From positions 62,001 to 126,000 of the forward strand of contig NIVC01002472.1 in NCBI GenBank assembly GCA_002269645.1: 64,000 nucleotides of DNA. Reading direction: 5' to 3'. The stretch comes from Macrostomum lignano (taxonomy: Eukaryota). How positions within the stretch are numbered: position 1 is the stretch's first letter; each line of letters opens with the position of its first letter. Both the position numbers and the translations under genes were made by a program. The notes below the pieces were generated by a model that saw only the letters and a list, made by a program, of their open reading frames with translations, searched no databases and had not been told where the DNA came from. Below are positions 19,825 through 61,262 of the stretch, one piece after another.

Positions 19825-20180
19825 GGTGCCCGTCTCTTTGGTAGACGCCCCTGTCTCTTTGGTAGACACCACTGTCTCCTTGATAGACGCCCCTGTCTTC
19901 TTGGTAGACGCCCTGTCTCCTTGGTAGACGCCCCGTCTCCTTGAAGACGCCCGTCTCCTTGAAGACGCCCGTCTCCTTGGTAGACGCCCCTGTCTCCTTG
20001 GTGGGCGCCCCTGTCTCCTTGGTACACGCCTCTGTCTCCTTCGTAGACGCCTCTGTCTCCTTGGTAGACGCCTCCGTTTCCTTGGTAGACGCCCCTGTCT
20101 CCTTGGCAGACTCCCTGTCTCCTTGGTAGACGTCCTGACTCCTTTGTGGGCGCCCCTGTCTCCTTGGTGGGCGCCCCGTC
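19825..20180 (-). repeat. GC-rich minisatellite of about 18-21-bp units (CCAAGGAGACAGGGGCGTCTA on the minus strand)
   Basis: Direct tandem units are visible, and they produce the repetitive ORFs in the track. Confidence 0.9.
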
Positions 20181-24400: not shown

Positions 24401-26961
24401 CGCAGCTAGGCCCACCGGACCACTCTCCGGGTGGACAGATCCTGGTTTCAATCATCATTTCTAGAGAGAGGACGGCTCGCGCCGCTAAATCCTTCTCTCC
24501 TTTTAAGTCACCGGGACCTGACAACATTTATCCTGCCTTCCTCCATGAGGTAGTGAAAAATGACGGGTTTCTTGGTCTCCTCTGCAACCCCTTTTTAGGG
24601 CAGCATTACCCTCGGGTACGTGCCAAAAGCCTGGCAAGAGGCCACGGTGGTCTTCATACCCAAACCAGGGAAGGGAGACTATCATTCTACCAAAGCTTAC
24701 CGCCCCATCAATCTGACGTCTTTCTTCCTCAAACTGATGGAACAGCTGTTGCTCTGGCGCCTCCTCCTCGTGGAGCTGAGGAACTCCCGCTCTCCCCCAT
24801 TCAGCACGCCTTTCGTCCTGGACGCTCCATCGAAAGTGCGCTGCACGCCAGTATCGACAAGCTGGAGCGCGCCGTGCTTGGCAGTGGATACAAGCTGTCG
24901 CTTTTCCTCGACATTGATGGTGCTTTCAATAATGTGCTCTTTGAAGCCTTTAGGCGGGCCCTGGAATCCCGGGGCACGCACGAGCACCTTACCCGCTGGA
25001 ACATGTACATGGTCTCCCATCGTACTGCCACCTCGCACCTCCTGGGACACTCCTGCTCAGAGGTCCAGAAAGGCGGACCGCAAGGTGGAGTCCTCAGCCC
25101 GATTCTCTGGAATTTAGTCATGGACGCGCTGCTTTGTAGCCCGCATCCGGATCCAGTTCAGAAGGTCGGCTATGCGAACGATGTTACCGCCACTGTGGCT
25201 GGACTATCACTCGTGGTCCTCAGGGACCTCCTTAAAGCCTTCATCCACTGTGCCGAACGCTGGGCACACGGCTGTGGCCTCAGATTCTGCTCACTTTCTG
25301 CTTGAGGCTGCTCACCTCACTTGAGGCAGTTCACGAGCCGCCGAAACTGGAGGATCTAACCGCTCTCCCTCTATGGCAAACCCGTTGCCATGGAGAAACA
25401 AACCAGATGTCTGGGCGTCACCCTCGACCACAGGTTGAGTCGGACCCCGCACGTCCAAACCAAAGCCCGCAAAGCTCTCGCGACTCTCGCACAGATCCGC
25501 AGAGCTTTCGGCGCTACCTGGGGCCTCATCCCCGTCGCCTCTGGTGGATCTAGACTGACATTGTTAGACCGGCCATCTCCTTCGCCGGCTTCATTTAGAA
25601 CAGTGCCCTAGAGGTGAAAGGGGTTCTTGAGGCTCTAAATAGGGTGCAAGGCCGCGCTTGTCGAGCTATCATGAGCGCGGCTCCCTCAACGCCCTTCGCT
25701 GGCATGAACTCCTTCCTGGACATTCCCCCCTTGACCTCTTCAAGGGGAGGCAATGAAGACCACCCGCGTCAGGGTGTCCTAATCCAGAAGCAGTTCGCCT
25801 TCAGAAAGCGGAACCTCCGGCCGCACGACGACCTCAGCGACCTTAGCCTGCGAGACCTGGAAGCAGCGGGAGACCTGCTGACCCTCTTGAACGGGATCCC
25901 GTCCACGCCCTGCCCTCCGCTCAAATTCAAAACCAGCATTCCACCACGCCATGAAGCAAGGGACAACTGGAAATCCCGTGAAATCCACTGCTTCACTGAC
26001 GGGTCCCAAATCAACTCCGCCTCTGGTTACGGCTACTGCATCGTATCTGGAGGGAGAGCTGTGGCGACCTTCTCCCTGCACACCGGCACCTTCCCCATGG
26101 AGCTCGCCAGTTCTCGGCTCGCAAGTTCTCGCCATCAGCTCCTGCGCCATGGAGCTGTATAATCAGCGGGTCTGGGAGAAGGAGATTACCCTCCACTCGG
26201 ACAGTCAAGCGGCGATTCACGCCCTTGAGCGCACCACCACCTGCTCGCGTACAGTCCTTGACTGCATCGGGCAGCTCAACCGCTTAGGCGCCTTCAGCAA
26301 GGTGTCCCTAAGGTAGAGATCCCTCGGTGGTCACTAAGGTGGGCACTCGGGCCACCCTGGCCAAGGCTGGCTCGACCGGTTCTTTTACTGGTACACTGCC
26401 CGTGGCCCCGACCCCCACCGCCGTTGTCACCACTCGGGTCAACCAGTGGGTTGGCTTCAAAGCACAGGGAGAGGTGGGAAAATCCCCTGACTTCCGGCAA
26501 TCCCGCGCGGCTGTCCCTTGTCTTCCTCCGCCCTGCGCAGCAGGGACATCAAGGCGGTGACAATGGCCCTCTCGGGTCATGGCTGTTTTGCCAGGCATCG
26601 CCACCTTCAGGGAAGAATCCGCAGCGAGAAATTCCCTTTCTGCCTCTCCGGTGTCGAGAATGCGGAGCATCATCTGTGAATGCCCTGTCTTTACTCAGGT
26701 CAGGCTCACCTACCTCGGCCCAAACCGAGGTCCGAGAATCTCTGCCAGCTCGTCCGCTACCTAAGGGCTACCGGGCGATCGACCATCCACCTCCTGGACT
26801 CTCCGGAGGGGGAGCGCGCTGCGGACACCGGCACCACCGGAACTCCCAGCGCGACACCGCAGCACTAGCTGCCCGTGGTCGCCAGGGGTTAGCAAAATGG
26901 GCGGCAACGCCTCCTCGCTGTTTCCTGACGCACGTAGCCCCCTGCAGCTAAGTAAAGTAAG
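21485..26961 (+). mobile_element. Degenerate non-LTR retrotransposon (LOA/R1-like: ORF1 remnant, APE endonuclease, RT, RNase H, C-terminal Cys/His region)
   Basis: APE motifs LLQEPW and AGDINAHH..WGS; RT motifs KSPGPDNI, YRPINLTS, DIDGAFNN, PQGGVLSPILWNLVM and YANDV; RNase H motifs FTDGS and SDSQAAI. Many frameshifts and stops; TAAG-type tail at about 26950-26961. Confidence 0.9.
22872..23751 (-). mobile_element. 5'-truncated RTE-like LINE nested in the endonuclease of the LOA-like element
   Basis: RT C-terminus GYADDLALL...GLKLNARKT...FVYLGG, (GTT)n tail, and 8-bp TSD TGCACCAC (22864-71 / 23752-59). The host frame LLAYICTT|NTEFCNIG rejoins across the insertion. Confidence 0.9.
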
Positions 26962-27282: not shown

Positions 27283-28800
27283 ATGGACATTGCAGGAATG
27301 GCGCCAAGCTTCAACTACACAATGCAGAGTCTGTTGCATATTTTGCCAGGTAAATTTTTAGACAATAAACTCTTTACAGGTCACCTATACAACTATCACC
27401 TTATACGCTCGTAGTTCAACTGTACCCCTTTCTCAACAAAAACTGCAGAGCTGACTTATCCCGGACTCGCACTGCTGTCTATTGGATCCACAATTGGAAC
27501 TCTGGGCAACATATTGGTCATCAGCGCCATCTTTCTGCTAAAGGTATTACAAACTTCTATGTGTAATGCACGCTCGTGATTCAATGGCAGTTTTATTATT
27601 GCTCAGAAAGATAAAACAGCCTGCTAAAAAACTTAGAAATATTTCAATACAAGTAAATCTTGACGCAGCAGCAATATGAACAAGCGTGGAACTGTTTAAT
27701 TTAATCTGACAAATCAAATAATTAGCGCTGCACTTGCAGACACTGCGGCATGTGGGCAACCTGTTCGTTGTGAATCTGGCTATCGCTGATCTGTGCATCA
27801 CCACTATTGTCGACCCCATGGCAATTACTGGTGAGAGTGGAGTTACTATCGTTAACAAAGCAACTTTTATGTTACATGTACGTCAGAATACATGCTCCCT
27901 ACTTGTATTAAAGGGTTGCTGCACGGCGAGATCTACTTCGAGCAGCGACCCGCCCTGTGCGAGTTCGTGGCGTCGACCTGCCTCACCTCCTGCTACTGCT
28001 CGCTGCTCAGCATCGCCGCTGTGGCCGTCAACCGCTGCGTCTTCATCTGCAACAACGCCAGCTACAACAGATTCTTCAACCGGCGCAGCTGCGTAGCGCT
28101 CTGCGTCGGCCTGTGGATTGTGAGCTGGCTGCTGCAGTTTCCCAACTTTGTGGGCTGGGGCGACTTCGCCTACGACAGGAAGAACTTTGCCTGCGTGTGG
28201 AACCGCATGGCTGACAGGTCCTACACGATCTTCTTCTCCTGCTGCGCTGTAGTTGCGCCCAGCATTGTGATCCTCATCTGCTACTTTCGCATCTTCGTGC
28301 ACGTCAGGCAGGTAATGGCGCAGGTACGGCGACTTCAGATCGGAGACTCGGCGCAAGGGGCTGGCCGAGGAAGCGGTGGCAGCAACAGCCTTGACTCGAT
28401 CCGCCTTGCTAGAACTCTTTTTCTCGTGTTCGCCGTGTTCGCTCTCTGCTGGGCTCCGTACGCGACCATCGTGGCTCTGGACTGGAACGACAGCTTTCCG
28501 ATCCACGTGCACGCCTACGCTGTGCTTTTCGCGCACACCAACTCGAGCGTCAACTTTATCGTCTACGGGCTCACTAATAAGGAGTTTCGCACCGGATATC
28601 GATTCGTTTTAGTCAAAGTGCTGCGCCTGCTTTTCGGCGGTCGGTGCAATCCGCAGGCCAGCGTTGGAGCCGCTAACAGCATTCTTGTAATGGAGATGGA
28701 ACCCACTGCAGCCACTAAGCTAAAAAAAACCGCATTCGACACTGTGACGGCGTCCACATCTAACAGAGAATCGGAGCGTCCGCGTGTCAAGGGGAATTAA
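27283..28800 (+). CDS. Melatonin-receptor-like class A GPCR, paralogue 2 (379 aa, intact)
   Basis: Exons 27283-27349, 27449-27543, 27740-27830 and 27914-28800. The first three exon sizes (67/95/91 nt) and phases match paralogues 1 and 3; 7-TM motifs as above. Confidence 0.92.
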
Positions 28801-30151: not shown

Positions 30152-33100
30152 ACTAGCAATCTTTGCCCCCGATGGGGGACATCTGGATAGAATCCTTGTT
30201 CTTTACAAATAACAAATAGGGCTCTTTTATGTTCGACATGGTGGCTCTTTTATGTTCGACATGGTGGCTCTTTTATGTTCGACATGGTGGCTCTTTTATG
30301 TTCGACATGGTGGCTCTTTTATGTTCGACATGGTGGCTCTTTTATGTTCGACATGGTGGCTCTTTTATGTTTGGCATGGTGGCTCTTTTATGTTTGGCAT
30401 GGTGGCTCTCTAATGTTCGACATGGTTGCTCTTTAATTTTTGACATGATGCCTCCTTTATGTTTGACATTGTGGCTCTTGAATGTTTTACATGGTAGCTC
30501 TTTTATGTTTGACTTGGTGGCTCTTTAATGTTCGATATGGTGGCTCTTTAATGTTCGACATGGTGGTTCTTTAATGTTCGACATGGTGGCTCTTTTATGT
30601 TTGGCATGGTGGCTCTTTTATGTTCGACGTGGTAGGTCTTTAATGTTTGGCATGGTGGCTCTTGAATGTTTGGCATGGTGGCTCTTTAATTTTCGACATG
30701 GTGGCTCTTTAACGTTTGACATGGTGGCTCTTGAATGTTTGACATGGTGGCTCTTTAATGTTTGACGTGGAGTCACCTATATGTTTTACATGGTGGCTCT
30801 TTAATGTTTGACATGGTGGCTTTTTAACGTTTGACATGGTGGCTCTTGAATGTTTGACATGGTGGCTCTTTAATGTTTGACATGGAGTCACCTATATGTT
30901 TTACATGGTGGCTCTTCTATGTTTGACATGGTAGCTCTTTAATGTTCGACATGGAGGCTCTTTAACGTTTGACATGGTGGCTCTATTATATCTGACATGG
31001 TGGCTCTTTTATGTTTGACATGGTAGCTCTTTAATGTTCGACATGGAGGCTCTTTAACGTTTGACATGGTGGCTCTATTATATCTGACATGGTGGCTCTT
31101 TTATGTTTAGCATGGTGGCTCTTTTATGTTCGACATGGTGGCTCTTTTATGTTTGGCATGGTGGCTCTCTAATGTTCGACATGGTGGCTCTTTAATTTTT
31201 GACATGATGCCTCCTTTATGTTTGACATTGTGGCTCTTGAATGTTTTACATGGTAGCTCTTTTATGTTTGACTTGGTGGCTCTTTAATGTTCGATATGGT
31301 GGCTCTTTAATGTTCGACATGGTGGTTCTTTAATGTTCGACATGGTGGCTCTTTTATGTTTGGCATGGTGGCTCTTTTATGTTCGACGTGGTAGGTCTTT
31401 ATGTTTGGCATGGTGGCTCTTGAATGTTTGGCATGGTGGCTCTTTAATGTTTGACGTGGAGTCACCTATATTTTTACATGGTGGCTCTTTAATGTTTGAC
31501 ATGGTGGCTTTTTAACGTTTGACATGGTGGCTCTTGAATGTTTGACATGGTGGCTCTTTAATGTTTGACATGGAGTCACCTATATGTTTTACATGGTGGC
31601 TCTTCTATGTTTGACATGGTGGCTCTTTAATGTTCGACATGGTGGCTCTTTAATGTTCGACATGGTGGCTCTTTTATGTTTGACATGATGGCTCTTTTAT
31701 GTTTGACATGGTGGCTCTTTAATGTTCGACATGGTGGCTCTTTTATGTTTGGCATGGTGGCTCTTTTATGTTTGACATGGTAGCTTTTTTATGTTTGATA
31801 TGGTGGCTCTTATATGTTCGACATGGTGGCTCTTTTATGATCGACATGCTGGCTCTTTTATGTTTGGCATGATGGCCCTTTTTTATGTTTGACATGGTAG
31901 CTCTTTAATGTTTGACATGGAGGCTCTTTAACGTTTGACATGGTGGCTCTTTTATGTTTGGCATGGTAGCTCTTTAATGTTCGACATGGTGGCTCTTTTA
32001 TGTTTGGCATGGTGGCTCTCTAATGTTCGACATGGTGGCTCTTTAATTTTTGACATGATGCCTCTTTTATGTTTGACATTGTGGCTCTTGAATGTTTTAC
32101 ATGGTAGCTCTTTTATGTTTGACTTGGTGGCTCTTTAATGTTCGATATGGTGGCTCTTTAATGTTCGACATGGTGGTTCTTTAATGTTCGACATGGTGGC
32201 TCTTTTATGTTTGGCATGGTGGCTCTTTTATGTTCGACGTGGTAGGTCTTTATGTTTGGCATGGTGGCTCTTGAATGTTTGGCATGGTGGCTCTTTAATG
32301 TTTGACGTGGAGTCACCTATATGTTTTACATCGTGGCTCTTTAATGTTTGACATGGTGGCTTTTTAACGTTTGACATGGTGGCTCTTGAATGTTTGACAT
32401 GGTGGCTCTTTAATGTTTGACATGGAGTCACCTATATGTTTTACATGGTGGCTCTTCTATGTTTGACATGGTGGCTCTTTAATGTTCGACATGGTGGCTC
32501 TTTAATGTTCGACATGGTGGCTCTTTTATGTTTGACATGATGGCTCTTTTATGTTTGACATGGTGGCTCTTTAATGTTCGACATGGTGGCTCTTTTATGT
32601 TTGGCATGGTGGCTCTTTTATGTTTGACATGGTAGCTTTTTTATGTTTGATATGGTGGCTCTTATATGTTCGACATGGTGGCTCTTTTATGATCGACATG
32701 GTGGCTCTTTTATGTTTGGCATGATGGCCCTTTTTTATGTTTGACATGGTAGGTCTTTAATGTTTGACATGGTAGCTCTTTAATGTTTGACATGGAGGCT
32801 CTTTAACGTTTGACATGGTGGCTCTTTTATGTTTGGCATGGTAGCTCTTTAATGTTCGACATGGTGGCTCTTTTATGTTTGGCATGGTGGCTCTTTAATG
32901 TTCGACATGGTGGCTCTTTAATGTTTGACATGGTAGCACTTTAATGTTCGACATGGAGGCTCTTTAACGTTTGACATGGTGGCTCTATTATATCTGACAT
33001 GGTGGCTCTTTTATGTTTGACATTGCGCTCCTTTTATATTTAGCATTATGTGCTTTTAAGGTGTTTTAATAAAAAAATCATTTTGCGCTACTAAGATTCG

Positions 33101-33617
33101 AACCCAGGTCACTACAATAGCAGTCCAGTCTGTTCGCATCTAGGCTATCTCGTTTCAATCGGAGAACATGAACTCTCGCCCTTATAATTCAATACTTTCA
33201 GCAAGTCAGTTAGAGTAAAAAGTTATGACACAATCAATTTCTCAGTCAGCCAGTATCAGTCTCAATTTAAGTTAGCAATATGGTTACGCAATTTCAATCA
33301 TGTCGTGTGTGCATTTCTTCGGCACTGTTTTCAACTTGTTGTGATGCAATCTTTATCAGAATTGAAATTCAGTCAGTTAGTTTTTTCTCTAGCATTCTTA
33401 CAATGCATTTCAAGTCAAAAATTTGGCTTGACCTTTGCAAAAAAGCATGTTTTTCGAATATTTAATCCCATTTACATTCAGCGATTTCTTAGCCAAGATG
33501 CATGTACCGTCCCAGGAAAATTTCTGATCGAATGGTGCAAGTTTGAAGAAAATCGGCTTAGCCGTTTTTTCTGAAATCTATCTCACAGAGACACACATTT
33601 CATTTTTAGTATATAGG
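30152..33617 (+). mobile_element. Non-autonomous Helentron/HINE (DINE-1-like) element, copy 1, carrying a 23-bp satellite
   Basis: 5' end ACTAGC..GCCCCC..GGGGGACATCTGGATAGAATC, central tandem array, and a 3' module of about 390 bp ending TGCAAGTTTGAAGAAAATCGG...CATTTTTAGTATATAGG. Both ends are repeated in copy 2. The class call comes from end architecture, not from a search. Confidence 0.7.
30221..33040. repeat. 23-bp satellite array (ATGTTTGACATGGTGGCTCTTTA/T), about 120 units
   Basis: Direct tandem repetition. Confidence 0.97.
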
Positions 33618-36457
33618 ACTAGCAAACTTCGCCCCCCGTTGGGGGACATCTGGATAGAATCTCTGTTCTCTACAAGTAACAAAAAGACAGCCAAATAAAG
33701 CCTTCACAAAGACGACAGACAAACTGCTCTAATAAAGTGTAATGCAAAAAGAAATCATCCCAAGACAGCAAGCATCCTCCAGATTGCAAGCATCCCCCAG
33801 ATAGCAAGCATCCCGAAAAAGTAAGCATCCACCATAAAATAAGTAGCTAGTGCTACAATTTCCTTAGCTCTATAGTGGCTCCTTTAAAATTGGCATGACG
33901 CTTAATTTTACGTTTGAAATTGTGTAAATTTTATGTTTGACTTGGTGGCTCTTTAATGTTTGACATGGTGGCTCTTTTATGTTCTACATGGTAGCTCTCT
34001 TATGTTTGATTCGGGGTTTTCTTAATGTCTGACATGGTGTCTCTTTATTGTTTGACATAGTGGCTCTTTTATGTTTGACATGGTGGCTCTTTTATGTTTG
34101 ACATGGTGGCTCTTTAATGTTCGACATGGTGGCTCTTTAATGTTTGACATTATGGCTCTTTAATGTTTGACATGGTGTCTCTTTAATGTTTGACATGTTG
34201 TCTCTTTAATGTTTGACATGGAGTCATGTATATGTTTGCCATGGTGGCTCTTTAATGTTAGACATAATGTCTCTTCAATGTTTGACATGGAGTCATGTAT
34301 ATGTTTGACATGGTGGCTCTTTAATGTTTGACATGGTGGCTCTTTAATGTTTGACATGGTGGCTCTTTAATGTTTGACATAGTGGCTCTTTAATTTTCGA
34401 AATGGTGGTTGTTTTATGTTCTACATGGTGGCTCTTTAATGTTCGACATGGTGGCTCTTTAATGTTCTTAACGGTGTCTGTTTAATGTTTGACATGGTGG
34501 CTCTCTAATGTTCGACATGGTGGCTCTTTAATGTTTGACATGGTGGCTCTTTAATTTTCGAAATGTTGGCTGTTTTATGTTTGACATGGTGGCTCTTTAA
34601 TGTTAGACATGGTGGCTCTTTAATGTTTGACATGGTGGCTCTTTAATGTTCGACATGGTGGCTCTTTAATGTTAGACATGGTGTCTCTTTAATGTTTGAC
34701 ATGGAGTCATGTATATGTTTGACATGGTGGCTCTTGTATTTTTAACATGTTAGCTCTTTAATGTTCGACATGGTGGCTCTTTAATGTCCAACATGGAGTC
34801 ACGAATATGTTTGACATGGAGTAATGTATATGTCTGATATGGTAGCTCTTTAATGTTTTACATGGAGTCACGCATATGTTTCACATGGTGGCTATTTTAT
34901 GTTTGACATGGTGGTTCTTAAATGTTCGACATGGTGGCTCTTTAATGTTTTACATGGTGGCACTTTCATGTTTGACCTGGTGGCTCTTTAATGTTTGACA
35001 TGGTGGCTCTTTAATATTTGACATGGTGGCACTTTCCTGTTTGACCTGGTGGCTCTTTAATGTTTGACATGGTGGCTCTTTAATGTTTTACATGGTGGCA
35101 CTTTCATGTTTGTAATGGTGACTATTTTATGTTCTACATGGTGGCTCTTTTATGTTCGACATGGTGGCTCTTTAATGTTTGATAAGGTGGCTATTTAATG
35201 TTCGACATGGTGGCTCTTTAATTTTTGACAAGGTGGCTCTTGAATGTTTGAAATAGTGGCTCTTTAATTTTCGAAATGGTGGCTGTTTTATGTTTGACAT
35301 GGTGGCTCTTTAATGTTCGACATGGTGGCTCTTTAATGTTTTTAATGGTGTCTGTTTTATGTTTGACATGGTGGCTCTTTAATGTTTGACATGGTGGCTC
35401 TTTAATGTTTGACATAGTGGCTCTTTAATTTTCGAAATGGTAGCTGTTTTATGTTCTACATGGTGGCTCTTTAATGTTCGACATGGTGGCTCTTTAATGT
35501 TCTTAATGGTGTCTGTTTTATGTTTGACATGGTGGCTCTCTAATGTTCGACATGGTGGCTCTTTAATGTTTGACATGGTGGCCCTTTAATGTTTGACATG
35601 GTGGCTCTTTTATGTTAGACATGGTGGCTCTTTAATGTTCGACATGGTGGCTCTTCAATGTTTGACATGGAGTCATGTATATGTTTGACCTGGTGACTCT
35701 TCAATATTTGACATGGTGGCTCTTTAATGTTTGACATGGGGTCTCTTCAATGTTTGACATGGTGGCTCTTTTATCTTTGACATGGTGGCTCTTTAATGTT
35801 CGACATGGTGGCTCTTTAATTTTTGACATGGTGGCTCTTTAATTTTCGAAATGGTGGCTCTGTTTTATGTCTGACATGGTTGCTCTTTAATGTTCGACAT
35901 AGTGGCTGTTTTATGTTTGACATGGTGGCTCTTTAATGTTCGAAATAGTGGCTGTTTTATGTTTGACACGGTGGCTCTTTAATGTTCGACATGGTGGCTC
36001 TTTAATGTTTTACATGGTGGCACTTTCATGTTCGACATGGTGGCTCTAATGGACATATAGTGGACATAATCAATTTCTCAGTCAGCCAGTATCAGTCTTA
36101 ATTGAAGTTAGCAATATGGTTACACAATTTTAATCAAGTCGGGTGTGCATTTCTTCGACACTGTTTTCAAATTGTTGTGATGCAATCTTTATCACAATCG
36201 GAATTCAGCCAGTCAGTTTTTTCTCTAGCATTCTTACAATGCATTCCAGGTCGAAAGAGCTGCTTGACCTTTGCAAAAAAGCATGTTTTTCGAATATTTA
36301 ATCCCTTTAAAATTGAGCAATTTCTTAGCCAGGATGCATGTACCGTCCCAGGAAAATTTCTGATCGAATGGTGCAAGTTTGAAGAAAATCGGTTGAGCCA
36401 TTTTTTCTGAAATCTATCGCATAGCTAGTTACAGACGTTTCATTTTTAGTATATAGG
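33618..36457 (+). mobile_element. Helentron/HINE-like element, copy 2, joined head-to-tail to copy 1
   Basis: Junction ...TAGTATATAGG|ACTAGC with no spacer, and the same 5' and 3' modules (3' module 36067-36457 vs 33231-33617). Confidence 0.7.
33930..36048. repeat. Second array of the 23-bp satellite
   Basis: Same consensus as the first array, with a different set of variant units. Confidence 0.97.
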
Positions 36458-36776: not shown

Positions 36777-37802
36777 TTAGTAACGAGTGTGCCCTCCGCG
36801 AGCACGCAGCAAGGTAGAAATTCTTCGCGGCATCCCCAGAATAAGGCGCCGCAAACATTCTTGAGGAAGACTCTGCCAGGCATCTGTAATGGCTTGGCGC
36901 AGTTGCATGACATTTTGTGGCGGATTCTCCCGCTGAATTTTGCGCTTCAGAAAGTCCCACACATGTTCGATCGGGTTCATATCCGGGGACCGGGAAGGCC
37001 AGCGAAGCGTGCGTAGCTGCAGCTGCTCCTTCAGTTGTGTCACAGCGGCAGCTCGATGTGGCGGCGCATTGTCATCCTGAAGGGTGCAGTTTGCAACGCC
37101 TCCAAAGGCTGCGTTGGCAAAGGGCAAAAAATGAGTCTGCAGAAGATGAGCGTAGGAATCGGCGTTTACATTTGTGTCCAGAAAGACAATTTCCGTCCTC
37201 GAGTGTAATGAGATTCCAGCCCAGATATGGATAGACGCTGACTGACTGTCTGCACATTGCACATGCTTCTGCACCATCTCCTGTCGTGGTTCTCGCCACA
37301 CACGAGTGCGACCATCAACTCGGAAAAGGCGAAACCGGCTCTCATCGGTGTATACGACACGCCGCCACTGCTGCTGCCTCCAGTGAATGCGCTGCATAGC
37401 CCACTGCTCACGACAGGCAAAATGAGCAGGACTTAGCCGCGGTCGCCTGCGCATCTTTCGGGAGTGCAGCCCAGCTTCTCGGAGACGCCGTCGGATGGTC
37501 TGAGCACTCAGGATTTTTCCTCGCCTGCTTCTCTCGCCCCACATCAGACGGCCGGAGCAGAGTGGCTGGGAGAGTTGAGAGTCCTCTGACAGTTCGCAGC
37601 AGTCGTCGATCCGCCCAGCAGTTGTGCTGCGAGAACGGCCACGCTGGCCTCGACTTGCGTGAGCCACACTGCCTGTCTCTCTCGACTTAATCAGCAACTT
37701 CTGGATGGTCTTTTGGTTTGGGCCGAACTGGCGAGCCACTGCTCTAATAGACATCCTGGCTTCGATCATGCCTACAGCCCGCCATCGCTCAGCATCTGTC
37801 AT
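36777..37802 (-). CDS. Tc1 DD34E transposase, intact ORF (341 aa)
   Basis: YTDESRF, QDDNAPPH, then 34 residues to the E of NPIEHVW; N-terminal HTH-type region. Confidence 0.93.
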   Translation of the reverse strand: MTDAERWRAVGMIEARMSIRAVARQFGPNQKTIQKLLIKSRETGSVAHASRGQRGRSRSTTAGRIDDCCELSEDSQLSQPLCSGRLMWGERSRRGKILSAQTIRRRLREAGLHSRKMRRRPRLSPAHFACREQWAMQRIHWRQQQWRRVVYTDESRFRLFRVDGRTRVWREPRQEMVQKHVQCADSQSASIHIWAGISLHSRTEIVFLDTNVNADSYAHLLQTHFLPFANAAFGGVANCTLQDDNAPPHRAAAVTQLKEQLQLRTLRWPSRSPDMNPIEHVWDFLKRKIQRENPPQNVMQLRQAITDAWQSLPQECLRRLILGMPRRISTLLRARGGHTRY

Positions 37803-38206
37803 CTGCCGGACCACTTTGACGTACAGCAGGAAACGAAGTGCGCACATGAAAACTGAGTTGGAGATTTAACTCGCCCGTTACTCCAACCTCTATTTATTAC
37901 ACAGCTCAAATCCATTGTATGTCTATCTATTGTATTACATGTATATGCCCCCGCGGTGTAGAGAATGAGTTGCGCAACTTGCAAGTGAGATCCGAGAGAA
38001 ATCGCTCGGCGCAAAGGGTGGCAACTTTTCAATATTGCTATGTATGCTTATATTTAGCAATTTAGACAAAAACCGGTTGATAAAAGTCAGAAAATGTATA
38101 CAAATTAACAGTTGATTGCACAGTCCGGCGGAGCGCTCACAGAGTTGCAATGAGTGGGAGAGATGGAGAGAGAGAGAGAGAGAGAGAGATGAGAACAAGT
38201 GTACAC

Positions 38207-39395: not shown

Positions 39396-40792
39396 ATGGA
39401 TATCGTTGGGATATCGCCACAGTTTAACTACACGCTGCAGAGTCTTCTGTACGTCGTGCCAGGTAAGATATATTTTACAAAAAACAAGCCAGACTAAAAA
39501 CCGTGCAATTGCTTGTGTCTAGAAAGAAGCTTGCATTCGAACCCAATACCACAGAGATTACATTTCCTGGTTTGTTCCTTCTGACATTCGGTTCAACGGT
39601 GGGGACCATCGGCAATATCCTGGTTATCTGCGCCGTGTTCCTCCAAAAGGTGAGCAAGCAAATGGGCAGCACACGTACTCAAGTCAAGAGTGTAAAAATG
39701 AAAAATTATTTGTATGCATTTTCAGACTCTGCGCCACGTGGGCAACTTGTTCGTCGTGAACTTGGCCATCGCCGATCTGTGCATTACGATATTCGTTGAC
39801 CCGTTCGCCATCACTGGTAAGTCACTGCACTGCCTTCACAGACGTTGACTTCAACTACACAGACTATCCAAATCAAAAACGCAATTCCAGGCGTAATGCA
39901 CGGCGAGATCTACTTCGAGCAGCGAGTTGCTCTGTGCGAGTTCGTGGCGTCGACCTGCCTCACCTCCTGCTACTGCTCGCTGCTCAGCATCGCCGCTGTA
40001 GCCGTCAACCGCTGCGTCTTCATCTGCAACAACGCCAGCTACAACAGATTCTTCAACCGGCGCAGCTGCGTAGCGCTCTGCGTCTGTCTGTGGATTGTGA
40101 GCTGGCTGCTGCAGTTTCCCAACTTTGTGGGCTGGGGCGACTTCGCCTACGACAGGAAGAACTTTGCCTGCGTGTGGAACCGCATGGCTGACAGGTCCTA
40201 CACGATCTTCTTCTCCTGCTGCGCTGTAGTTGCGCCCAGCATTGTGATCCTCATCTGCTACTTTCGCATCTTCGTGCACGTCAGGCAGGCGATGGCTCGG
40301 GTGCGCCATCTGCAGCTGGGAAATGCCAGAGATGCGCAGGGCGGAGCTTCGAACAGCGGAAACGACCGACCTGGTGGCAGCCTAGACTCGATCCGCTTAG
40401 CCCGCACTCTGTTCATCGTGTTCGCCGTGTTCGCTCTCTGTTGGGCTCCGTACGCGGCTTTCGTGGCTCTGGACTGGGACGACAGCTTCCCGATCCACGT
40501 GCACGCTTATGCGATCTTATTTGCCCACTCCAACTCGAGCGTCAACTTCATCGTCTACGGTCTCAGCAACAAGGAGTTCCGCTCCGGCTACCGCATTGCC
40601 TGCGGCAGGCTGCTGCGCCTCATCTGTGGCAGCCGGTGCAAACTGCAGGGCAGCATCGGAGCCAGCACCTTCGTCAGCCAGAAGGGCACAAACCGCAGCG
40701 TCGTTATGAACAATCTCCCTAGTAAGACGACTGCTACGAACAACCGAGGGGGCATGGAGGATGGCAACGAAGCGCGCAGCAAAGACATGTAG
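39396..40792 (+). CDS. Melatonin-receptor-like class A GPCR, paralogue 3 (384 aa, intact)
   Basis: Exons 39396-39462, 39555-39649, 39726-39816 and 39891-40792; same motifs and exon sizes as the other paralogues. Confidence 0.92.
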
Positions 40793-42954: not shown

Positions 42955-45500
42955 TCAGGTGGCGCCAACCGGGGCCACATTGTCAAACAATTCAACAAAG
43001 CCACCAACAGAGTCGCGCAGTCGGTCAGCCAATTCGTTCAAAAGCTTCATTGTTTGCTCGTCAATTTCCACCCGTTCGAACGGCTCGTAACGCACTGACG
43101 CGTCCAAGACGGACAAGCCGGCAGAGCGAAGCCCGTCAGCGACCGAGTTGATGGCGACCGGGGCGCAGTCGAACACGAAGGCGCCGCTGCCACCTTCAAC
43201 GCTGTCGCCAGCAGATTCAAAGCGCACATCGGTGCAGTCGAATTCCAGCGCGAGTTCAGTGGCCCGGTCCAGATTGGGCAGCCGCTCCGGATCGTGGGCC
43301 ACCTCTACGCAGCCTTTCTTTTCATAGAAGTTCTTACTGATGGACGAATCAATGCCGGCTACCTCCAGGCCGATTCGTTTCACCTGGCTGGCCACCTGGG
43401 GTGAAATTAACAAATAGTTCGAAGCATTTTTAATTACATTTTCCAGCACCAAGGCTGCAAAAGTCAATAAAGTTCCAGAGGGTGGGAGATCTGATCGGTG
43501 TTTTGCAATCGTACCCTTTTCTCTCGTACATTACCCCAACCCTTCTAGCCAACCCCAACCCTCCAGTTTTCTCTAACCCGCGTATGCTGATCACGCCACC
43601 TCACACCAGTCCCTAGCGTTCCGTACATTGGCATTTCAATTAATTATTCGTGTTGCCCAACTGATAAATATAAATATAATGAAGCTGTTGTCCAGTTGGC
43701 ATACGCTCTCTCTCTTTTTCCTACCGTTTCAACTTGACTTCCCGGCACCATCTGATCAGTTTCAGACAATGGAGAACTAAAGCAGAAGACCCCTTAAACT
43801 CGCAGTTCGTGTGATCGTTATGGGAAGTTGTTTTGGCTGCACAATTGCACTAGAAATGCGGAGTTCTAAGTACTAAATTGACAATATTCCGCTTTTGAAC
43901 TTCTAAAAGGCACAATACAGTTGTAAAATCACAATATCATTTTTAATATAATAACTCCATGAGGTGCCAGTTTGAGAAAAATTTAAGCAGAAAATTGAGT
44001 CAAGTTACCACTGTATCAGGCCTGTACTCATGAAAAGAGGATGTGAACTTGAGAGTCGAAACGGAGCCCGAAACAAGCATTTCGTATCGCTCGATTGATA
44101 TTCATAAAGCTTTTATTTGTTTTGAAAATTAGCATTCTATGTTAATTTTAATATCCAAAGCTATAGAGCCATAAAAAAGCTATAAGATCATTTAACACGT
44201 GCCTTCGACCCTCCATTCTAGATCAGAAAAAAATAATTTTCTTAGGCAGTTCAGCCTTTAAAACGTCAAGGATCTTCTTTTAGATTGACGATTGTTTGAG
44301 ATTCTGATAGAAATCTCAAGACAGCAATGGGAGGCTTTAAGGAGCGATTTAGATTTCAAATACAATCTCAGCCAAGGTTGCGAATCCCAAGGCACATTGG
44401 CACTCTAATATCTAAGGACTGCCTTTGATCTGCGGCATGCCGATATCCCTTGAGAGCACAGGAATATCGTAAAGAAATATCTACATGGAAACTCTTATTA
44501 CAAGCTAGCACCGAGAAGTATTTGCCTTTAATCTGTCTTTAATTAGAGTAAAGAATCAAAGAGTGAGACTGATAATCTCCTTTTTCGAATGCTGGCAAAA
44601 GTTAAAAGCCAGAAATATCAATTAGAGAGAGAGAGACAGAGAGAACGGCCTGATCTTTAATTATGACGTCCATAGCTGATCAAACAGACGGGCTAACCTC
44701 ATGCTTGCACTTAGTTCGGTGCGGACTATTAGACACCACCAAGAGGCAGATGCCACCGCGGCCCCGAACCTCAACAGCATAGGACTCAGCCGCTTCAACC
44801 GACTTTGCCGCCAGCATTCGCTCCAAAGTTTTCAGCGGCACATTATCCGATTTGGCTTTGTCAAACACTGCTTTCAGGTGAACATTAGTCTGAACATTTG
44901 TACTGCCATTTCCGTTAATAACCGCTTGGCGCAGCATTCTTGTGTACAGAGACATCAAAGTCCGTTTCTGGGCCATTCCGGCCTCTTTGTCGCCGCGGAC
45001 ATTCTGCCAGCGGGAGTGGCCCGCTAGCCGGCGGCTCAGCAGCAACGGCGCAGAGGCTGCCGACGCGGTCCAAGTCTTGCCAACAGAGGGCACCACAAAG
45101 GCGCCAAGAGGACTAAACAATGCCCGGAAGATTAGACGAGACTGCAAATCAATTGAAACATTCGTTATTAGGATTTAAGTGACGAATGTTAAGCGGTAGT
45201 GACAAGATAAGTTTCCCTTTCAGTTAACATGTTAGCACGTATTAGGACCTACTTTTGCAAAGGTCTTCCATCAATAATACTAACGAAAAAGCACGAACCT
45301 ACAGTTAAATTATGACCCTTTCTATTCAACTTAAGCAAACTATTGAAAAACAAAAAGCACGTATCAATAAAAAGTATCCGAATTTTCATTAGTAGCATTT
45401 TGACGCTTACAAGGAGGACAAGCGATATTTCTTACAAAGAACCCAGTTTTCTTTAATAAAATCAATTATAAATTCAAGTAATACTTACTTCCCAGGACAT
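42955..45500 (-). CDS. TACO1: Translational activator of cytochrome c oxidase 1 / YebC-PmpR family protein (about 298 aa)
   Basis: Exons 45500-45489 (MSWE, donor GTAAGT; inferred), 45141-44698 and 43395-42955. It has an Arg/Ser/Ala-rich transit-peptide-like N-terminus, then AGHSRWQNV, E.RGRGG and YEKKG.V.V. Confidence 0.88.
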
Positions 45501-46083: not shown

Positions 46084-46866
46084 TTACGACTTCACAACCG
46101 TGCGAAGATTTCCGCTATTGTCTTTGCTGCTTCTATCGACCTCTGAAGACGCTCCAGAAGACGAACAACTCGAACAGCTGCTCGAGCCAGAAGAGGAAGA
46201 AGTCTCAGTTGAAGCTGACGACGAATAAGGAGACGAAGAAGTGCAGGAATAAGACTTCGATGAGCTCGAGAGCGAGCCTGATGATTCCGATGCAGAGCCG
46301 GGCTCTGCAGAGAAGGGTTTAACAGCAACAACAGCGCCGTTATTAACAGTCTCTTGCTGATGCTGGTACACTGGTTCAAGACGAGGCGGTTGAAATCTGC
46401 AATTCGGCCGCTTATGCTGTTGCTGAAGCCCGGGTGCACAGTCGGACAACTGCGGCTCGCCAGCTTCGTCAGTGAGGATGGCATCTCGATCATTCTGACG
46501 GACACTTCCGCAGCTGCCAGCCGTGCTAGCGCCGATTAATGAACGCCTTCGACAGGTGCACCGGCAGCGGCAGAGCAGGCTTAGCCAGAGACAGACAGCT
46601 AGACAAGCAACTAAAGCGCCAGTTGCCATGGTTACTAAGCCAGCAATAGAACTAGCCGACAGCGAGAACCTGCCGCCAACAATTAGAAGAATGGCGGCAA
46701 TTAGAGCTAAGGAGACGGCTATGCCAGTCAGGCTCAGAAACAGCCGAGCCGGAGTGGAGCAGAAGGAGGGGCAGCGGCAGCAGCGCGGCTGCCGGCCAAG
46801 CCAGCTGGAGAGCGGGTCAGCGTTGCTCGCAACTGTTGGATGTTGAGTAAGTGCAGTTGAAAGCAA
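46084..46866 (-). CDS. Orphan ORF with two hydrophobic segments, Cys-Arg clusters and a Ser-rich tail; the true start is probably in an upstream exon
   Basis: 260-codon GC-rich frame with TM-like LFLSLTGIAVSLALIAAILLIVG and IAGLVTMATGALVACLAVCLWLSLL. There is no in-frame ATG before these segments. Confidence 0.55.
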   Translation of the reverse strand: MLSTALTQHPTVASNADPLSSWLGRQPRCCRCPSFCSTPARLFLSLTGIAVSLALIAAILLIVGGRFSLSASSIAGLVTMATGALVACLAVCLWLSLLCRCRCTCRRRSLIGASTAGSCGSVRQNDRDAILTDEAGEPQLSDCAPGLQQQHKRPNCRFQPPRLEPVYQHQQETVNNGAVVAVKPFSAEPGSASESSGSLSSSSKSYSCTSSSPYSSSASTETSSSSGSSSCSSCSSSGASSEVDRSSKDNSGNLRTVVKS

Positions 46867-48420: not shown

Positions 48421-48643
48421 GCCAGTTAATAATAATTATTTTTATTATAAAATTATAACAACAGTTTAACCTGACTCATTAACAATATCTTTGCATTTGT
48501 AGTGACTGGCTGCTAGGCTAGCTGGTTATTCAGCAGCATTCACTAGCTTTCCCTAAGAGTGCTGTGATCCGCTGCATAGTAGCTCAGTCCACCTGATCTA
48601 GTGAGAGAGATACCCTGTGCTGGGCCTAAGTGTTTACTGCCTG

Positions 48644-49005
48644 ATGACTCATCGCCAGAGCAGGCGCGGGCAGCCACACTTAATGTCTTCCCACTCGCGC
48701 TGAGGAGGCGTAGCAGAATGACTCATCACCTGCGCGGAGTGTAATGGCTGCCTAGAGGGAGTAAACAAGATGACTCATCTGCCCATGTTCTATTTTTAGC
48801 ATAGAAAAGCACGTGACTGTGCACGCACACTGTGCGTGGCCACTGACCTTGAGTCACGCCACTGCTGCGTGACAGGGTTGCCTTATTTGGATGTTGGCCT
48901 TGAATCACGCGTCGCTTGCATGATTTTTGTGACCAAATAAGGAAGTTTCACGCGCTCACCGTATGAAACTCACGTGACTTTTGGGGGTCCACTCGGCTAT
49001 AAATA
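48644..49005 (+). promoter_or_regulatory. Cluster of AP-1 and E-box motifs ending in a TATA box
   Basis: ATGACTCATC three times (TGACTCA cores at 48645, 48719, 48771), TGAGTCA at 48850, CACGTGAC at 48810 and 48971, and TATAAATA at 48998. Confidence 0.55.
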
Positions 49006-52035: not shown

Positions 52036-52648
52036 TTAGCAGAAGTTTCTGAAATAACCAATTTTCCTGTCGAACTTCCATTTGCAGCGTCTGAAATTGC
52101 GATATACATGTACATGTAGTAGGTGTTAGTTCTGTCACTTCTCAATAACTCATATTAAACTGCAGTTTATCAGTGCTTTGAACTTACTCTTCAACATCGC
52201 CGCTTTCGTCATCTGCAGAAGTCTCAGACTCGTCGACTGTCGCGGGCTCTTCTAAAGCACCTGGAAAGTAATATGCATGAGGCAAAGTGCATGTATACAG
52301 AGGTACATAAATATATTGAAGCATCTTTTGAATTTTGCTATTGACTTTGACACCTGTGCACGGCCCCAATATTTGTCACTTTGTCTTCGTTCTTTCGGTG
52401 AGTTCTTAAATTCTGAACAACACCGTCACAAAAGCATGGATGCATTAATTAATACAGTACGTAGCAGTACCCTCGGTTGTTTCATCTGAATGCATAATAC
52501 ATGCATATCACAAGAAAAAAGCTGCTTTAAAGCAAAAGAACTTGCCATAATTTCCGTAGTTAGAATCGCCGTTGAATTCCGCAAGACTTGTGCGAGCTAG
52601 CATGACCACCAGAGACACGAATAGAAGGGTCACAGTGAAGCGGGTCAT
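52036..52648 (-). CDS. Secreted prepropeptide A (76 aa): signal peptide + acidic propiece + cationic C-x14-C peptide CKWKFDRKIGYFRNFC
   Basis: Exons 52648-52546, 52260-52188 and 52090-52036 (231 nt, in frame). GCCACCATG start, GCAAGT donor for intron 1, GTAAGT for intron 2, TTCCAG and TTTCAG acceptors, AATAAA at 51904-51899. Product: MTRFTVTLLFVSLVVMLARTSLA-EFNGDSNYGNYGALEEPATVDESETSADDESGDVEER-CKWKFDRKIGYFRNFC. Confidence 0.85.
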
Positions 52649-53334
52649 GGTGGCAGCGCAGTGGTTTCAGATGATTTAGCCAAAACTGTTGTAGCACTGG
52701 AAGCGCGTGACTCATCGGCAAAAATATTGCTAAACCTTCCACCCAAATACGCAGACTGACTTAAAAGGCCAGCCTTTTATTGTTGGTAATGCAGTAATTG
52801 TGTTAAAGAATTTTCAGCTCGAAACTAGCTCACGTGTCTTGGACTAACAACCGATGCTCACGTGTGCAGTACTGCTCATCAGACTCATATTCATAAAATA
52901 GAAACCTTTGATTGCCCTGGCTACTATGCAGTCATTATGTGCGGCCAAAACCAGAAAACGCAATACGCTAACCACTTCTCTAACCATTGCAATAGCTACT
53001 GATTGCTTTTGCAATTGCAGTTAACTTCAGTGCTCCAGCTCAATTAATGCAGAGTTCTCTGGTAGCCAAGGGGTATTAAAGAAAGAGCAATTCGTGAGGA
53101 AACTCAAGCACAGAGCTATACATTCTCATTCAGTGATTTCTACCACCTCTAATCCTCTGTTTTTAACTCAGTGTTCTAACAGTTTTGTGAGTGACTTTCG
53201 CAAAAAGTCTAAAGTCTATAAGACTTTTTCAAGTACATCATTTTGTATTTTCTTGGTTACTTAATAAATTTAAAGTTCGTCTTTAATCATATGCTGTAAT
53301 CAGATTTATATGAATTTTGGTCCATCGCATGTGG

Positions 53335-53712
53335 CCCCAAACTCGAGTATCAGTGACTCAAAACACGTACGAGCGTACGAGTCTCAGTTGCTTAAAACTC
53401 GAGTCTTCAGTGACTCAAATCACGTAGGAGTCCTCTCTCAGTTGCCCCAAAAATCGAGTCTTCAGTGACTCAACACACGTAGGAGTCTCAGTTGCCCCAA
53501 AACTCGAGTCTCAGTGACTCAACACACGTAGGAGTCTCAGTTGCGCCAAAACTCGAGTCTTCAGTGACTCAACACACGTAGGAGTCTCAGTTGCGCCAAA
53601 ACTCGAGTCTCAGTGACTCAAAACACGTAGGAGTCTCAGTTGCCCCAAAACTCGAGTCTCTCAGTGACTCAAACACGCGGTACGAGTCTCAGTGCCCCAA
53701 AGCTCGAGTATC
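53335..53712. repeat. Minisatellite of about 50-bp units, each containing TGACTCA
   Basis: Unit CCCCAAAACTCGAGTCT(T)CAGTGACTCAACACACGTAGGAGTCTCAGTTG; seven TGACTCA copies counted. Confidence 0.92.
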
Positions 53713-53893
53713 AGTGGCCCAAAACGAGTCTCATAAAGTTCGAATAACAGCATTCTGTAAGTCGTTCGCTTGTCTTATTTCAGCCGAAACTAATTGTGCA
53801 AACTCTCTGTGAAGCTTTAAGCAACTTAATTCGTCTCTTACCTGCATACGATGCTCTGCATTATAATCCGTCTGAAATAATGAACGCACCTTA

Positions 53894-56896: not shown

Positions 56897-56898
<2 letters not shown>

Positions 56899-56945
<47 letters not shown>
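56899..56945. repeat. (GATA)n microsatellite
   Basis: Perfect tetranucleotide run. Confidence 0.95.
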
Positions 56946-57285
56946 TGATAACAAACAAAAGCCTGACACTCCATTTGTATGGAAAGAAATATAAGCTGTG
57001 ATAGGTAACTTGAAGTAGCTACTTGTATATTTAGATTGTTTCGCGGTAACTTTTTGCCAAAAAACAAGAGAAGTTATACAGGTATTGTTTTTATTTTGTG
57101 GATATACAAGCTATCTGTGTAATGGAAAATTTAGCATCCGATCTTCGGGGGGAAAGAACTCTGTTAGAGAGACTTAACAAGATTTTTAAAGACGTTACTG
57201 CTTCTGGCTAACACTGAAGAAACTATTTGTTGTTAAACTAAATTTCGAAGTATTTGTCGCCTCCGTGAGAAGTGGCTTGAGCAGC

Positions 57286-57723
57286 TCAAGGACACGCCAG
57301 GGTGTGCCGCTTGTGCTTCCTTCGGTACACCCACCTGCATCGCCTGAAATTATAAGGGGGGATTTCAGTTGGTGCCAAATTAATTTCTACGTAGTTTTTC
57401 TGCGCAGAGTTAAGAGTTGGGTTAACTTGGGGAATATTTGAGATAGAAGACAGTGAAGCAGCTAGCTAAAAGCCACACTGGACTCACTTCTGAAGGTCCT
57501 CATCGTCATCGGCCTCATCAGATTCCAGAGCCGGTTCCTCGGCTGAAATGTTGTACGAAAAAATGTTGGCTATGCCGATAGCTAAAAACCTAATTTAAAA
57601 AACTCGATCTCCACTTATGCGGGTCTCACCGTAGTCATCGGCATAATCGGAATCTTCATAGGCCGAGCAGACAAACACAGCAGTCAGAGACAGAAGCAGC
57701 AGAGCCGCAGTCAGGCGGTGCAT
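57286..57723 (-). CDS. Secreted prepropeptide B (68 aa): signal peptide + acidic propiece + KR + cationic C-x14-C peptide CRWVYRRKHKRHTLACP
   Basis: Exons 57723-57630, 57542-57488 and 57343-57286 (207 nt, in frame). GTGAGA and GTGAGT donors, two TTTCAG acceptors, AATAAA at 57095-57090. Product: MHRLTAALLLLSLTAVFVCSA-YEDSDYADDYAEEPALESDEADDDEDLQKR-CRWVYRRKHKRHTLACP. Confidence 0.9.
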
Positions 57724-57764: not shown

Positions 57765-57827
57765 TGACTCAGGTGCGGTTCGGGCTTGACAAGAAAAGAA
57801 AGGTCTTTGAAATTCGTTGCTTTTATA
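57765..57827 (-). promoter_or_regulatory. TATA box and AP-1 motif upstream of prepropeptide B
   Basis: TATAAAAG at 57827-57820 and TGAGTCA at 57771-57765 on the coding strand. Confidence 0.65.
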
Positions 57828-60727: not shown

Positions 60728-61262
60728 GGGTGCCTATCAGAAGACAGAGGCGCCCACCAAGAGACAAAGAGACAGGGGCGCCCACCAAGAGACAAAGAGA
60801 CAGGGGCGCCCACCAAGAGACAAAGAGACAGGGGCACCCACCAAGAGACAAGTGTGCCCACCAAGAGACAAGTGTGCCCACCAAGAGACAAGTGTGCCCA
60901 CCGAGAGACAAGTGTGCCCACCAAGAGACAGGGTCGCTCACCAAGAGACAGGGTCGCTCACCAAGAGACAGGGGCAACCACCAAAAGAGACAGGGTCGCT
61001 CACCAAGAGACAGGGTCGCTCACCAAGAGACAGGGGCAACCACCAAAAGAGACAGGGTCGCTCACCAAGAGACAGGGGCAACCACCAAAAGAGACAGGGT
61101 CGCTCACCAAGAGACAGGGGCAACCACCAAAAGAGACAGGGTCGCTCACCAAGAGACAGGGGCGCCCACCAAAAGAGACAGGGTCGCTCACCAAGAGACA
61201 GGGGCGCCCACCAAAAGAGACAGGGTCGCTCACCAAGAGACAGGTTCGTCCACCAAGGCACC
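60728..61262 (+). repeat. Compound minisatellite of CACCAAGAGACA-core units (19-24 bp), becoming a 42-bp dimer in its 3' half
   Basis: Units CACCAAGAGACAAAGAGACAGGGGCGCC, CACCAAGAGACAAGTGTGCC, and alternating CCACCAAAAGAGACAGGGTCGCT / CACCAAGAGACAGGGGCAA. Confidence 0.92.

Follow-up and report, generated by a model that had tools for sequence, protein, structure and literature searches.

A three-exon gene of Macrostomum lignano for a small secreted precursor with a putative C-terminal disulfide loop

Introduction

On the minus strand of a 64,000-nucleotide stretch of the Macrostomum lignano genome (hereafter, the window), positions 57286-57723 can be read as a short precursor that ends in a strongly basic, His-containing segment bounded by two cysteines. 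The locus raises the question of whether this is a genuine, expressed gene and, if so, what kind of molecule its C-terminal loop might be. On the grounds that the internal RRK and KR could be cut by convertases unless shielded by the disulfide, the initial annotation of the locus argued against a classical neuropeptide and proposed an effector that binds membranes or nucleic acids. M. lignano is, to our knowledge, the only flatworm in which both transgenesis and RNAi are routine, and an orphan secreted peptide gene in this species is directly testable. A signalling peptide would add a lineage-specific cyclic family to the phylum Platyhelminthes, in which most known neuropeptides are linear and amidated. 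A defence peptide would be the first antimicrobial peptide of endogenous origin for M. lignano, as far as the literature searched shows, and would also provide a compact, pH-sensitive, disulfide-stabilised scaffold.

Results

Structure and product of gene B

The gene at 57286-57723, here called gene B (Mlig016089.g2), was reconstructed on the reverse complement of positions 57900-57150, with the exons joined at GT-AG sites; no other such sites preserve the reading frame. Exon 1 (57630..57723, minus strand, as are all features of this gene) begins with the ATG read at 57723, encodes the signal peptide and the start of the propiece, and ends in phase 1. It is followed by an intron of 87 nt (57543..57629; GT...AG, gtgaga...tttcag, phase 1) and by exon 2 (57488..57542), which carries the acidic propiece AEEPALESDEADDDEDLQ together with the first two bases of the Lys50 codon and ends in phase 2. 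The second intron (57344..57487; GT...AG, gtgagt...tttcag, phase 2) spans 144 nt. Exon 3 (57286..57343) completes Lys50 and encodes Arg51, the 17-mer CRWVYRRKHKRHTLACP (57339-57289), and the TGA stop codon (57288-57286). A TATA box, TATAAAAG, is located at 57820..57827, approx. 97 nt 5' of the ATG, and is the same in the second genomic copy described below (locus L001). The first AATAAA 3' of the stop codon occupies 57090..57095, 191 nt past the stop, which gives a 3'UTR of approx. 190 nt, and its flanks align to L001. The gene is complete, as had been claimed: the TATA box, GT-AG splice sites, and AATAAA are all in the sequence, the last of these lying outside the interval 57286-57723 originally quoted. 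When gene B was compared with the window by blastn, only the self-match was returned, i.e., it is single-copy there.

The spliced product, MHRLTAALLLLSLTAVFVCSAYEDSDYADDYAEEPALESDEADDDEDLQKRCRWVYRRKHKRHTLACP, consists of 68 amino acids. A hydrophobic-window scan placed a signal sequence at its N-terminus, with a hydrophobic core and small residues at -3 and -1 (MHRLTAALLLLSLTAVFVCSA/Y, where the slash marks the cut); cleavage is predicted after CSA, which makes residues 1-21 (57723-57661) the signal peptide. The 28-residue propiece (residues 22-49) contains 15 Asp or Glu residues when counted from the CSA/Y cut to the KR site, and the C-terminal 17-mer contains six Arg or Lys and two His but no acidic residues; both sets of counts agree with those given earlier. 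The cysteines of the 17-mer are at positions 1 and 16. No Gly-basic amidation site is present in the precursor of gene B.

GenBank record and evidence of transcription

An exact look-up revealed that the product of gene B is identical to PAA57557.1 (UniRef A0A267E9J9; BOX15_Mlig016089g2, Macrostomum lignano), the gene for which lies on contig NIVC01002472.1 of assembly GCA_002269645.1 and spans exactly the 438 nt of gene B. Gene B is already in GenBank, as an uncharacterised "hypothetical protein". The GenBank annotation of M. lignano was built from genome-guided and de novo RNA-seq assemblies only, with ORFs called by TransDecoder (PMC5730564). As both the protein and the span are identical in an annotation derived from RNA-seq, the exon model of gene B has transcript support. 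The lack of expression that the initial annotation had named as a refuting outcome can thus be set aside, because the transcript-derived GenBank model shows that gene B is transcribed. These results confirm that 57286-57723 (minus strand) is a genuine transcribed three-exon gene for a secreted 68-residue precursor. No tissue pattern, peptide detection, or receptor for Mlig016089 was found in the literature searched, including the supplements of PMC5816591, PMC5946080, PMC7336406, PMC5977470, and PMC12896417, of which at least one table was incomplete, so that this absence is uninformative. Peptide strings of gene B are likewise absent from the full-text literature searched.

A second genomic copy of gene B

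Large duplicated blocks occur in the M. lignano genome (PMC5730564), and gene B lies in one such block. A second copy, g1 (PAA59732.1), is found at locus L001 on contig NIVC01002236.1, which is collinear with the window over 45.9-64 kb at about 95-97% identity. A comparison of g1 with g2 shows 3 differences in the 207 exon positions of gene B, namely, an A6V substitution in the signal peptide and two synonymous changes, while 13 of the 233 aligned positions in introns 1 and 2 differ (Fisher p=0.02 for exons versus introns). In particular, exon 3 carries one synonymous change only. The binomial probability of three or fewer exon differences ranges from 0.003 to 0.04 according to the background rate used. 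L001 also has well-conserved promoter and UTR sequences, the ORF is intact in both genomic copies, and the sole non-synonymous change affects the signal peptide. The comparison of g1 with g2 provides modest evidence of constraint on gene B. The collinearity with L001 breaks at a (GATA)n microsatellite (window 56897-56950, approx. 340 nt 3' of the gene B stop codon), where approx. 590 nt of L001 (7526-8113) have no alignment to the window.

The tandem paralog, gene A

A tandem paralog, gene A (52036..52648, minus strand; exons 52648-52546, 52260-52188, and 52090-52036), is located approx. 5 kb from gene B on the same strand and has identical intron phases. Its product is MTRFTVTLLFVSLVVMLARTSLAEFNGDSNYGNYGALEEPATVDESETSADDESGDVEERCKWKFDRKIGYFRNFC. 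Intron 1 has a GC donor in a strong context (G/GCAAGT, the slash marking the exon end) and is thus a GC-AG intron; an AATAAA was read at 51904-51899 (minus strand). The ORF of gene A in the window is intact, and its absence from the GenBank annotation is a concrete correction to be made; in neither copy does GenBank list another gene within 10 kb of gene B. In L001 (approx. 9844-10462), exon 1 of gene A is lengthened by a 2-bp insertion, the GC donor is destroyed by a 5-bp change, and exon 2 has an in-frame deletion of 3 bp; this copy may be a decaying pseudogene or may reflect an assembly error. Searches for further paralogs by regular expression and tblastn over the window, an additional 3.7 kb (L002), and all of L001 returned A and B only. 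A third loop candidate, 'RCVHYFRRIIMQSIVCR*' (53891-53838), was dismissed because its ring size is wrong and a tandem repeat adjoins it.

The two precursors share 38% identity (BLASTP E=1e-10). Invariant in both loops are the Arg before the first Cys and the two Cys with 14 residues between them (C-x14-C, a 16-membered ring), and within the ring, Trp at position 3, an aromatic residue at position 5, and R-K at positions 7-8. The two loops share the motif R-C-[KR]-W-[KV]-[YF]-x-R-K, and the propieces have EEPA, ES, and DDE in common. The aligned signal cut site of gene A is TSLA/E. Since ring size and a specific motif are kept in copies that diverged long ago, selection appears to have acted on the loop as a structural unit.

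The KR site in front of the loop is not kept in the same way. The 17-mer was initially placed behind a canonical KR site; KR does directly precede it in gene B (LQKR/C), but the only paralog has VEER/C, with no basic residue at P2, P4, P6, or P8. Because KR is replaced by EER in gene A, release of exactly the 17-mer is putative.

TGAGTCA elements near the two genes

An AP-1/TRE-like heptamer, TGAGTCA (57765..57771, minus strand), lies 3' of the TATA box and 5' of the ATG in gene B and is a candidate regulatory element. Gene A has the same heptamer in the same orientation between its TATA-like box and its ATG (52708-52714, minus strand), and both are conserved in L001. Apart from TGAGTCA, no block of convincing conservation emerged when the A and B promoters were aligned. 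AP-1 sites are a frequent feature of genes induced by stress or in immune responses. In the window as a whole, TGAGTCA occurs 23 times, versus 8.4 expected. Seven copies in gene orientation (53354-53671, minus strand) are associated with a 49/99-bp tandem repeat at 53374-53725, 0.7-1 kb 5' of gene A, and a further cluster is found at 48472-48856.

Physical chemistry of the loop and the propiece

It had been proposed that the charge of the 17-mer would rise at low pH, and the computed values bear this out (+6.1 at pH 7 and +7.8 at pH 5). The propiece of gene B has a charge of -15. Peptide A is less charged than peptide B (+4, with an Asp, versus +6) and far more aromatic. Both precursors carry more than twice as much acidic as basic charge; the propiece is thus not explained by simple neutralisation.

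The 17-mer of gene B is very hydrophilic: only 5 of its 17 residues are hydrophobic, and its mean Eisenberg hydrophobicity, -0.56, is below that of arenicin, thanatin, and bactenecin. Moreover, its hydrophobic moment is not above that of shuffled sequences at either 100 or 170 degrees (0.25 at 170 degrees, p=0.56). The segment YRRKHKRH of gene B fits the XBBBXXBX heparin-binding pattern, which makes binding of the 17-mer to polyanions plausible. Three Tyr in the propiece of gene B (YEDSDYADDY) are in classic sulfation contexts, and, judged by the consensus, they may be sulfated. A single-sequence AF2 model (pLDDT 61) gave a low-confidence helix across the KR site; it is uninformative and was not used. 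The oxidised 17-mer has a monoisotopic mass of 2207.16 Da.

Relatives and known peptide families

When a profile of A and B was searched against 5.8 billion word-indexed proteins, only their own M. lignano cluster (Mlig016089g1/g2) was recovered. HMMER/phmmer searches of 1.84 billion representatives returned this cluster and four long proteins that matched via acidic low-complexity stretches. Pfam at E<=10 gave noise only (PBP1_TM, VPDSG-CTERM), and the single PDB match (E=0.3) is not meaningful. So far as the databases searched show, gene B thus appears to be restricted to the Macrostomum lineage; other Macrostomum species are probably missing from these databases, and 'restricted to M. lignano' means that no relatives are detectable outside Macrostomum. 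Gene B is a lineage-restricted example of a very common kind of gene, namely, that for a small secreted propeptide with a disulfide loop.

Several known families were compared with gene B and rejected. The precursors of somatostatin, urotensin II, melanin-concentrating hormone (MCH), and allatostatin-C are similarly short, with a signal peptide, a spacer, a basic site, and an unamidated C-terminal disulfide ring encoded by the last exon. This layout is well established for these families and does not imply homology: the likeness is architectural only, as gene B has no FWK, RVY-in-C-x8-C, or CxFNPxSC core. In particular, somatostatin, urotensin II, and allatostatin-C are excluded by the C-x14-C ring, which differs from their rings of 6-12, and by the lack of any Pfam match at E<=10. 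The cores F-W-K-(T/Y) and C-(Y/F)-F-N-P-x-S-C are absent, the corresponding residues being R-W-V-Y in B and K-W-K-F in A. MCH, defined by C-x8-C and L-G-R-V-Y, has only VYR in common with gene B; the ring size is wrong, and there is no Pfam match. The natriuretic peptides also have a large C-terminal disulfide ring, but it is 17-membered rather than 16-membered, CFG and SGLGC are absent from the M. lignano peptides, and again no Pfam match was obtained. FDRKIG in gene A comes near the natriuretic MDRIG; however, the DRI element is wholly absent from B, and the likeness of gene A is judged to be coincidental.

Among antimicrobial peptides, thanatin, bactenecin, and arenicin resemble the 17-mer in length (12-21 residues), charge (+4 to +6), and a ring closed by one disulfide, and gene B begins its loop with CRWVY, which recalls RWCVY of arenicin in the absence of any sequence homology. 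The 17-mer is nevertheless more hydrophilic than these peptides and has no amphipathic segregation. Arenicin-type precursors carry a BRICHOS domain, while the 68-aa precursor of gene B has neither BRICHOS nor any other Pfam domain. An arenicin-class β-hairpin is not supported by the hydrophobic moment and mean hydrophobicity given above, neither of which fits an amphipathic hairpin. The precursors of Hydra arminins and of α-defensins follow a comparable logic, with a signal peptide, a strongly acidic propiece, a cationic C-terminus, restriction to a taxon, and tandem duplicates. Unlike in these precursors, the charges of gene B are unbalanced (-15 versus +6), its C-terminus is a Cys-bounded loop rather than a linear peptide or a defensin fold, and no sequence similarity exists. 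The known flatworm neuropeptide families (npp, spp, NPF, and FLP) were likewise set aside, since the searches of the 5.8 and 1.84 billion sequences gave no related protein and gene B has no C-terminal Gly amidation signal, which is usual in these families.

Discussion

A proposed cyclic peptide with a specific target

The best single account of gene B, held tentatively and at somewhat less than an even chance, is that a convertase processes its precursor to yield a cyclic peptide directed at a specific target, and that this peptide is either hormone- or neuropeptide-like or another type of ligand. The precursor would enter the ER, lose its signal peptide after Ala21, and form a Cys52-Cys67 disulfide that closes the ring. 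A convertase of the PC1/3 or PC2 type would then cut after KR51, which, lacking an Arg at P4, is not a furin site. Such a cut would free a cyclic, polycationic 17-mer and a highly acidic propeptide, and the former would act by binding a partner outside the cell (a receptor or a defined polyanionic ligand) rather than by lysing membranes.

The paralogs keep the Trp, the aromatic residue, the RK, and the Cys spacing though their charge differs (+6 versus +4), which argues for specific recognition rather than bulk electrostatics. The hydrophilicity of the 17-mer and its lack of amphipathicity favour the same reading, as does a layout like that of the somatostatin, MCH, urotensin II, and allatostatin-C precursors. 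Several features weaken it. Because EER stands in place of KR in the paralog, it is uncertain which enzyme processes the precursor and exactly what it releases, and the internal RRK and KR could themselves be cut. An amidation signal is lacking, which is unusual among flatworm neuropeptides, and as no homolog was detected outside the species, this reading gains no support from a conserved signalling family. Moreover, an anionic propiece followed by a cationic C-terminus is also classic for precursors of antimicrobial peptides. Finally, the GPCRs encoded in the window are melatonin-receptor-like and not peptide receptors: a ligand-receptor cluster was considered and rejected, as all three best match melatonin receptors (MT2 E=6e-33) and then aminergic receptors.

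Alternative readings

The proposal of the initial annotation, in which the peptide is a host-defence effector, ranks next and is only somewhat less likely than a peptide with a specific target. In such a scheme, the acidic propiece would keep the polycationic loop harmless until gland, epidermal, or gut cells secrete it; once free, the peptide would bind LPS, teichoic acids, or DNA, and the pair of His would add charge in acidic compartments. The rise in charge at pH 5, the propiece of -15, the match of YRRKHKRH to the heparin- and polyanion-binding pattern, and the short cationic ring closed by one disulfide, as in thanatin, bactenecin, and arenicin, are consistent with this proposal. So are the restriction of this orphan to one taxon together with its tandem duplication, a pattern typical of immune effectors, and the presence of TGAGTCA in both promoters and in the seven-copy array 5' of gene A. 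However, the 17-mer is non-amphipathic, poor in hydrophobic residues, and less hydrophobic than the three peptides named, the propiece carries far more charge than is needed to neutralise +6, and what is kept between the paralogs is specific residues rather than charge or hydrophobicity. In addition, no Macrostomum antimicrobial peptide or induction data were found in the literature searched. The paralog comparison and the non-amphipathicity slightly weaken the idea of an effector that may bind membranes or nucleic acids, and the step from the internal RRK and KR to such an effector finds no support in the present analysis. It is considerably less probable that the loop is not the final product and that convertases cut at the invariant mid-loop R-K (and at RR and KR in gene B) to excise a basic linker, in analogy to C-peptide excision in proinsulin. 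This would leave either a disulfide-linked two-chain peptide (CRWVY plus HTLACP from B; CKWKFD plus IGYFRNFC from A) or inactive fragments. R58-K59 is among the few invariant features of the paralogs, and the ring of B contains three potential basic cleavage sites; yet RK is a poor target for convertases, sites within a tight disulfide ring are often protected, and the invariance of RK might just as well reflect a part in binding. We know of no flatworm precedent for such an excision.

Two further readings place the function elsewhere or deny it. That gene B is a young orphan transcript whose peptide has no function under selection, and whose ORF persists only because the copies diverged recently, is improbable, to about the same degree as linker excision. 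No homolog was found anywhere, gene A is unannotated and seemingly broken in L001, and the constraint rests on just 3 exon versus 13 intron differences; however, paralogs with 38% identity that keep a signal peptide, intron phases, Cys spacing, and a motif would need long-term purifying selection, and gene B lacks none of the promoter, splice, or poly(A) signals and keeps its ORF in both copies. Less probable again is a function that resides in the polyanion, i.e., in the 28-residue propeptide, possibly Tyr-sulfated, or in the whole zwitterionic proprotein, which might act, for example, as a heparin-like competitor or as a coacervate component of a gland secretion, with the loop as an intramolecular partner or packaging signal. 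The large excess of acidic charge over the basic loop, the retention of EEPA, ES, and DDE in the paralog alongside the loop, and the three Tyr flanked by Asp or Glu are consistent with it. Against it, acidic spacers are commonplace in propeptides, gene A has no strong sulfation context, and the case is entirely circumstantial, including the predicted expression in the tail or releasing glands. In the adhesion model of M. lignano, a negatively charged releasing substance is postulated to detach the animal from its own cationic glue (PMC9229212), which would provide a role for such a polyanion. It is highly unlikely, though conceivable, that the hyper-acidic and probably Tyr-sulfated propeptide (-15 or lower) is this releasing substance, with the loop as its packaging or neutralising partner or, more generally, that A and B are the first members of a family of cyclic peptides, specific to Macrostomum and with 16-membered rings, that has a new target.

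Other features of the window

Three copies of a melatonin-receptor-like rhodopsin-family GPCR gene are present on the plus strand (13302-14453, approx. 27451-28800, and approx. 39557-40792), with small introns after TM1 and TM2. The copy at 13.3 kb has a frame change between TM4 and TM5 (approx. 13870-13887), which suggests a pseudogene or an assembly indel. Other coding features, all on the minus strand, include exons of the TACO1/YebC family (42955-45147), a 567-aa ORF with a protein kinase domain (5251-6954), and an ORF of 260 aa that encodes transmembrane segments and a Ser-rich tail and matches no Pfam family (46084-46866). Rfam gave zero matches across the window.

Mobile and repeated elements are also present. 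Between GPCR copies, a GC-rich region (21900-26950; 0.56-0.61) with RVT_1 ORFs broken up over several frames represents a degraded non-LTR retrotransposon (LINE). An intact Tc1/mariner transposase ORF of 356 aa with HTH_Tnp_Tc3_2 and DDE_3 domains occupies 36777-37847 (minus strand) and has no called gene on record; a truncated second copy related to Tc1/mariner lies at 8264-8938 (plus strand). A satellite of 5.8 kb (30220-36047) consists of approx. 252 copies of the 23-nt unit GGCTCTTTAATGTTTGACATGGT, with 74% matches, and has a very strong strand asymmetry (AT skew of approx. -0.4, GC skew of up to +0.27). Related satellites with units of 20, 21, or 42 nt (…GGGGCGCCCACC…) are found in opposite orientations at 19832-20177 and 60742-61257, and they yield long spurious ORFs with repeated 'RDRVAHQETG' translations.
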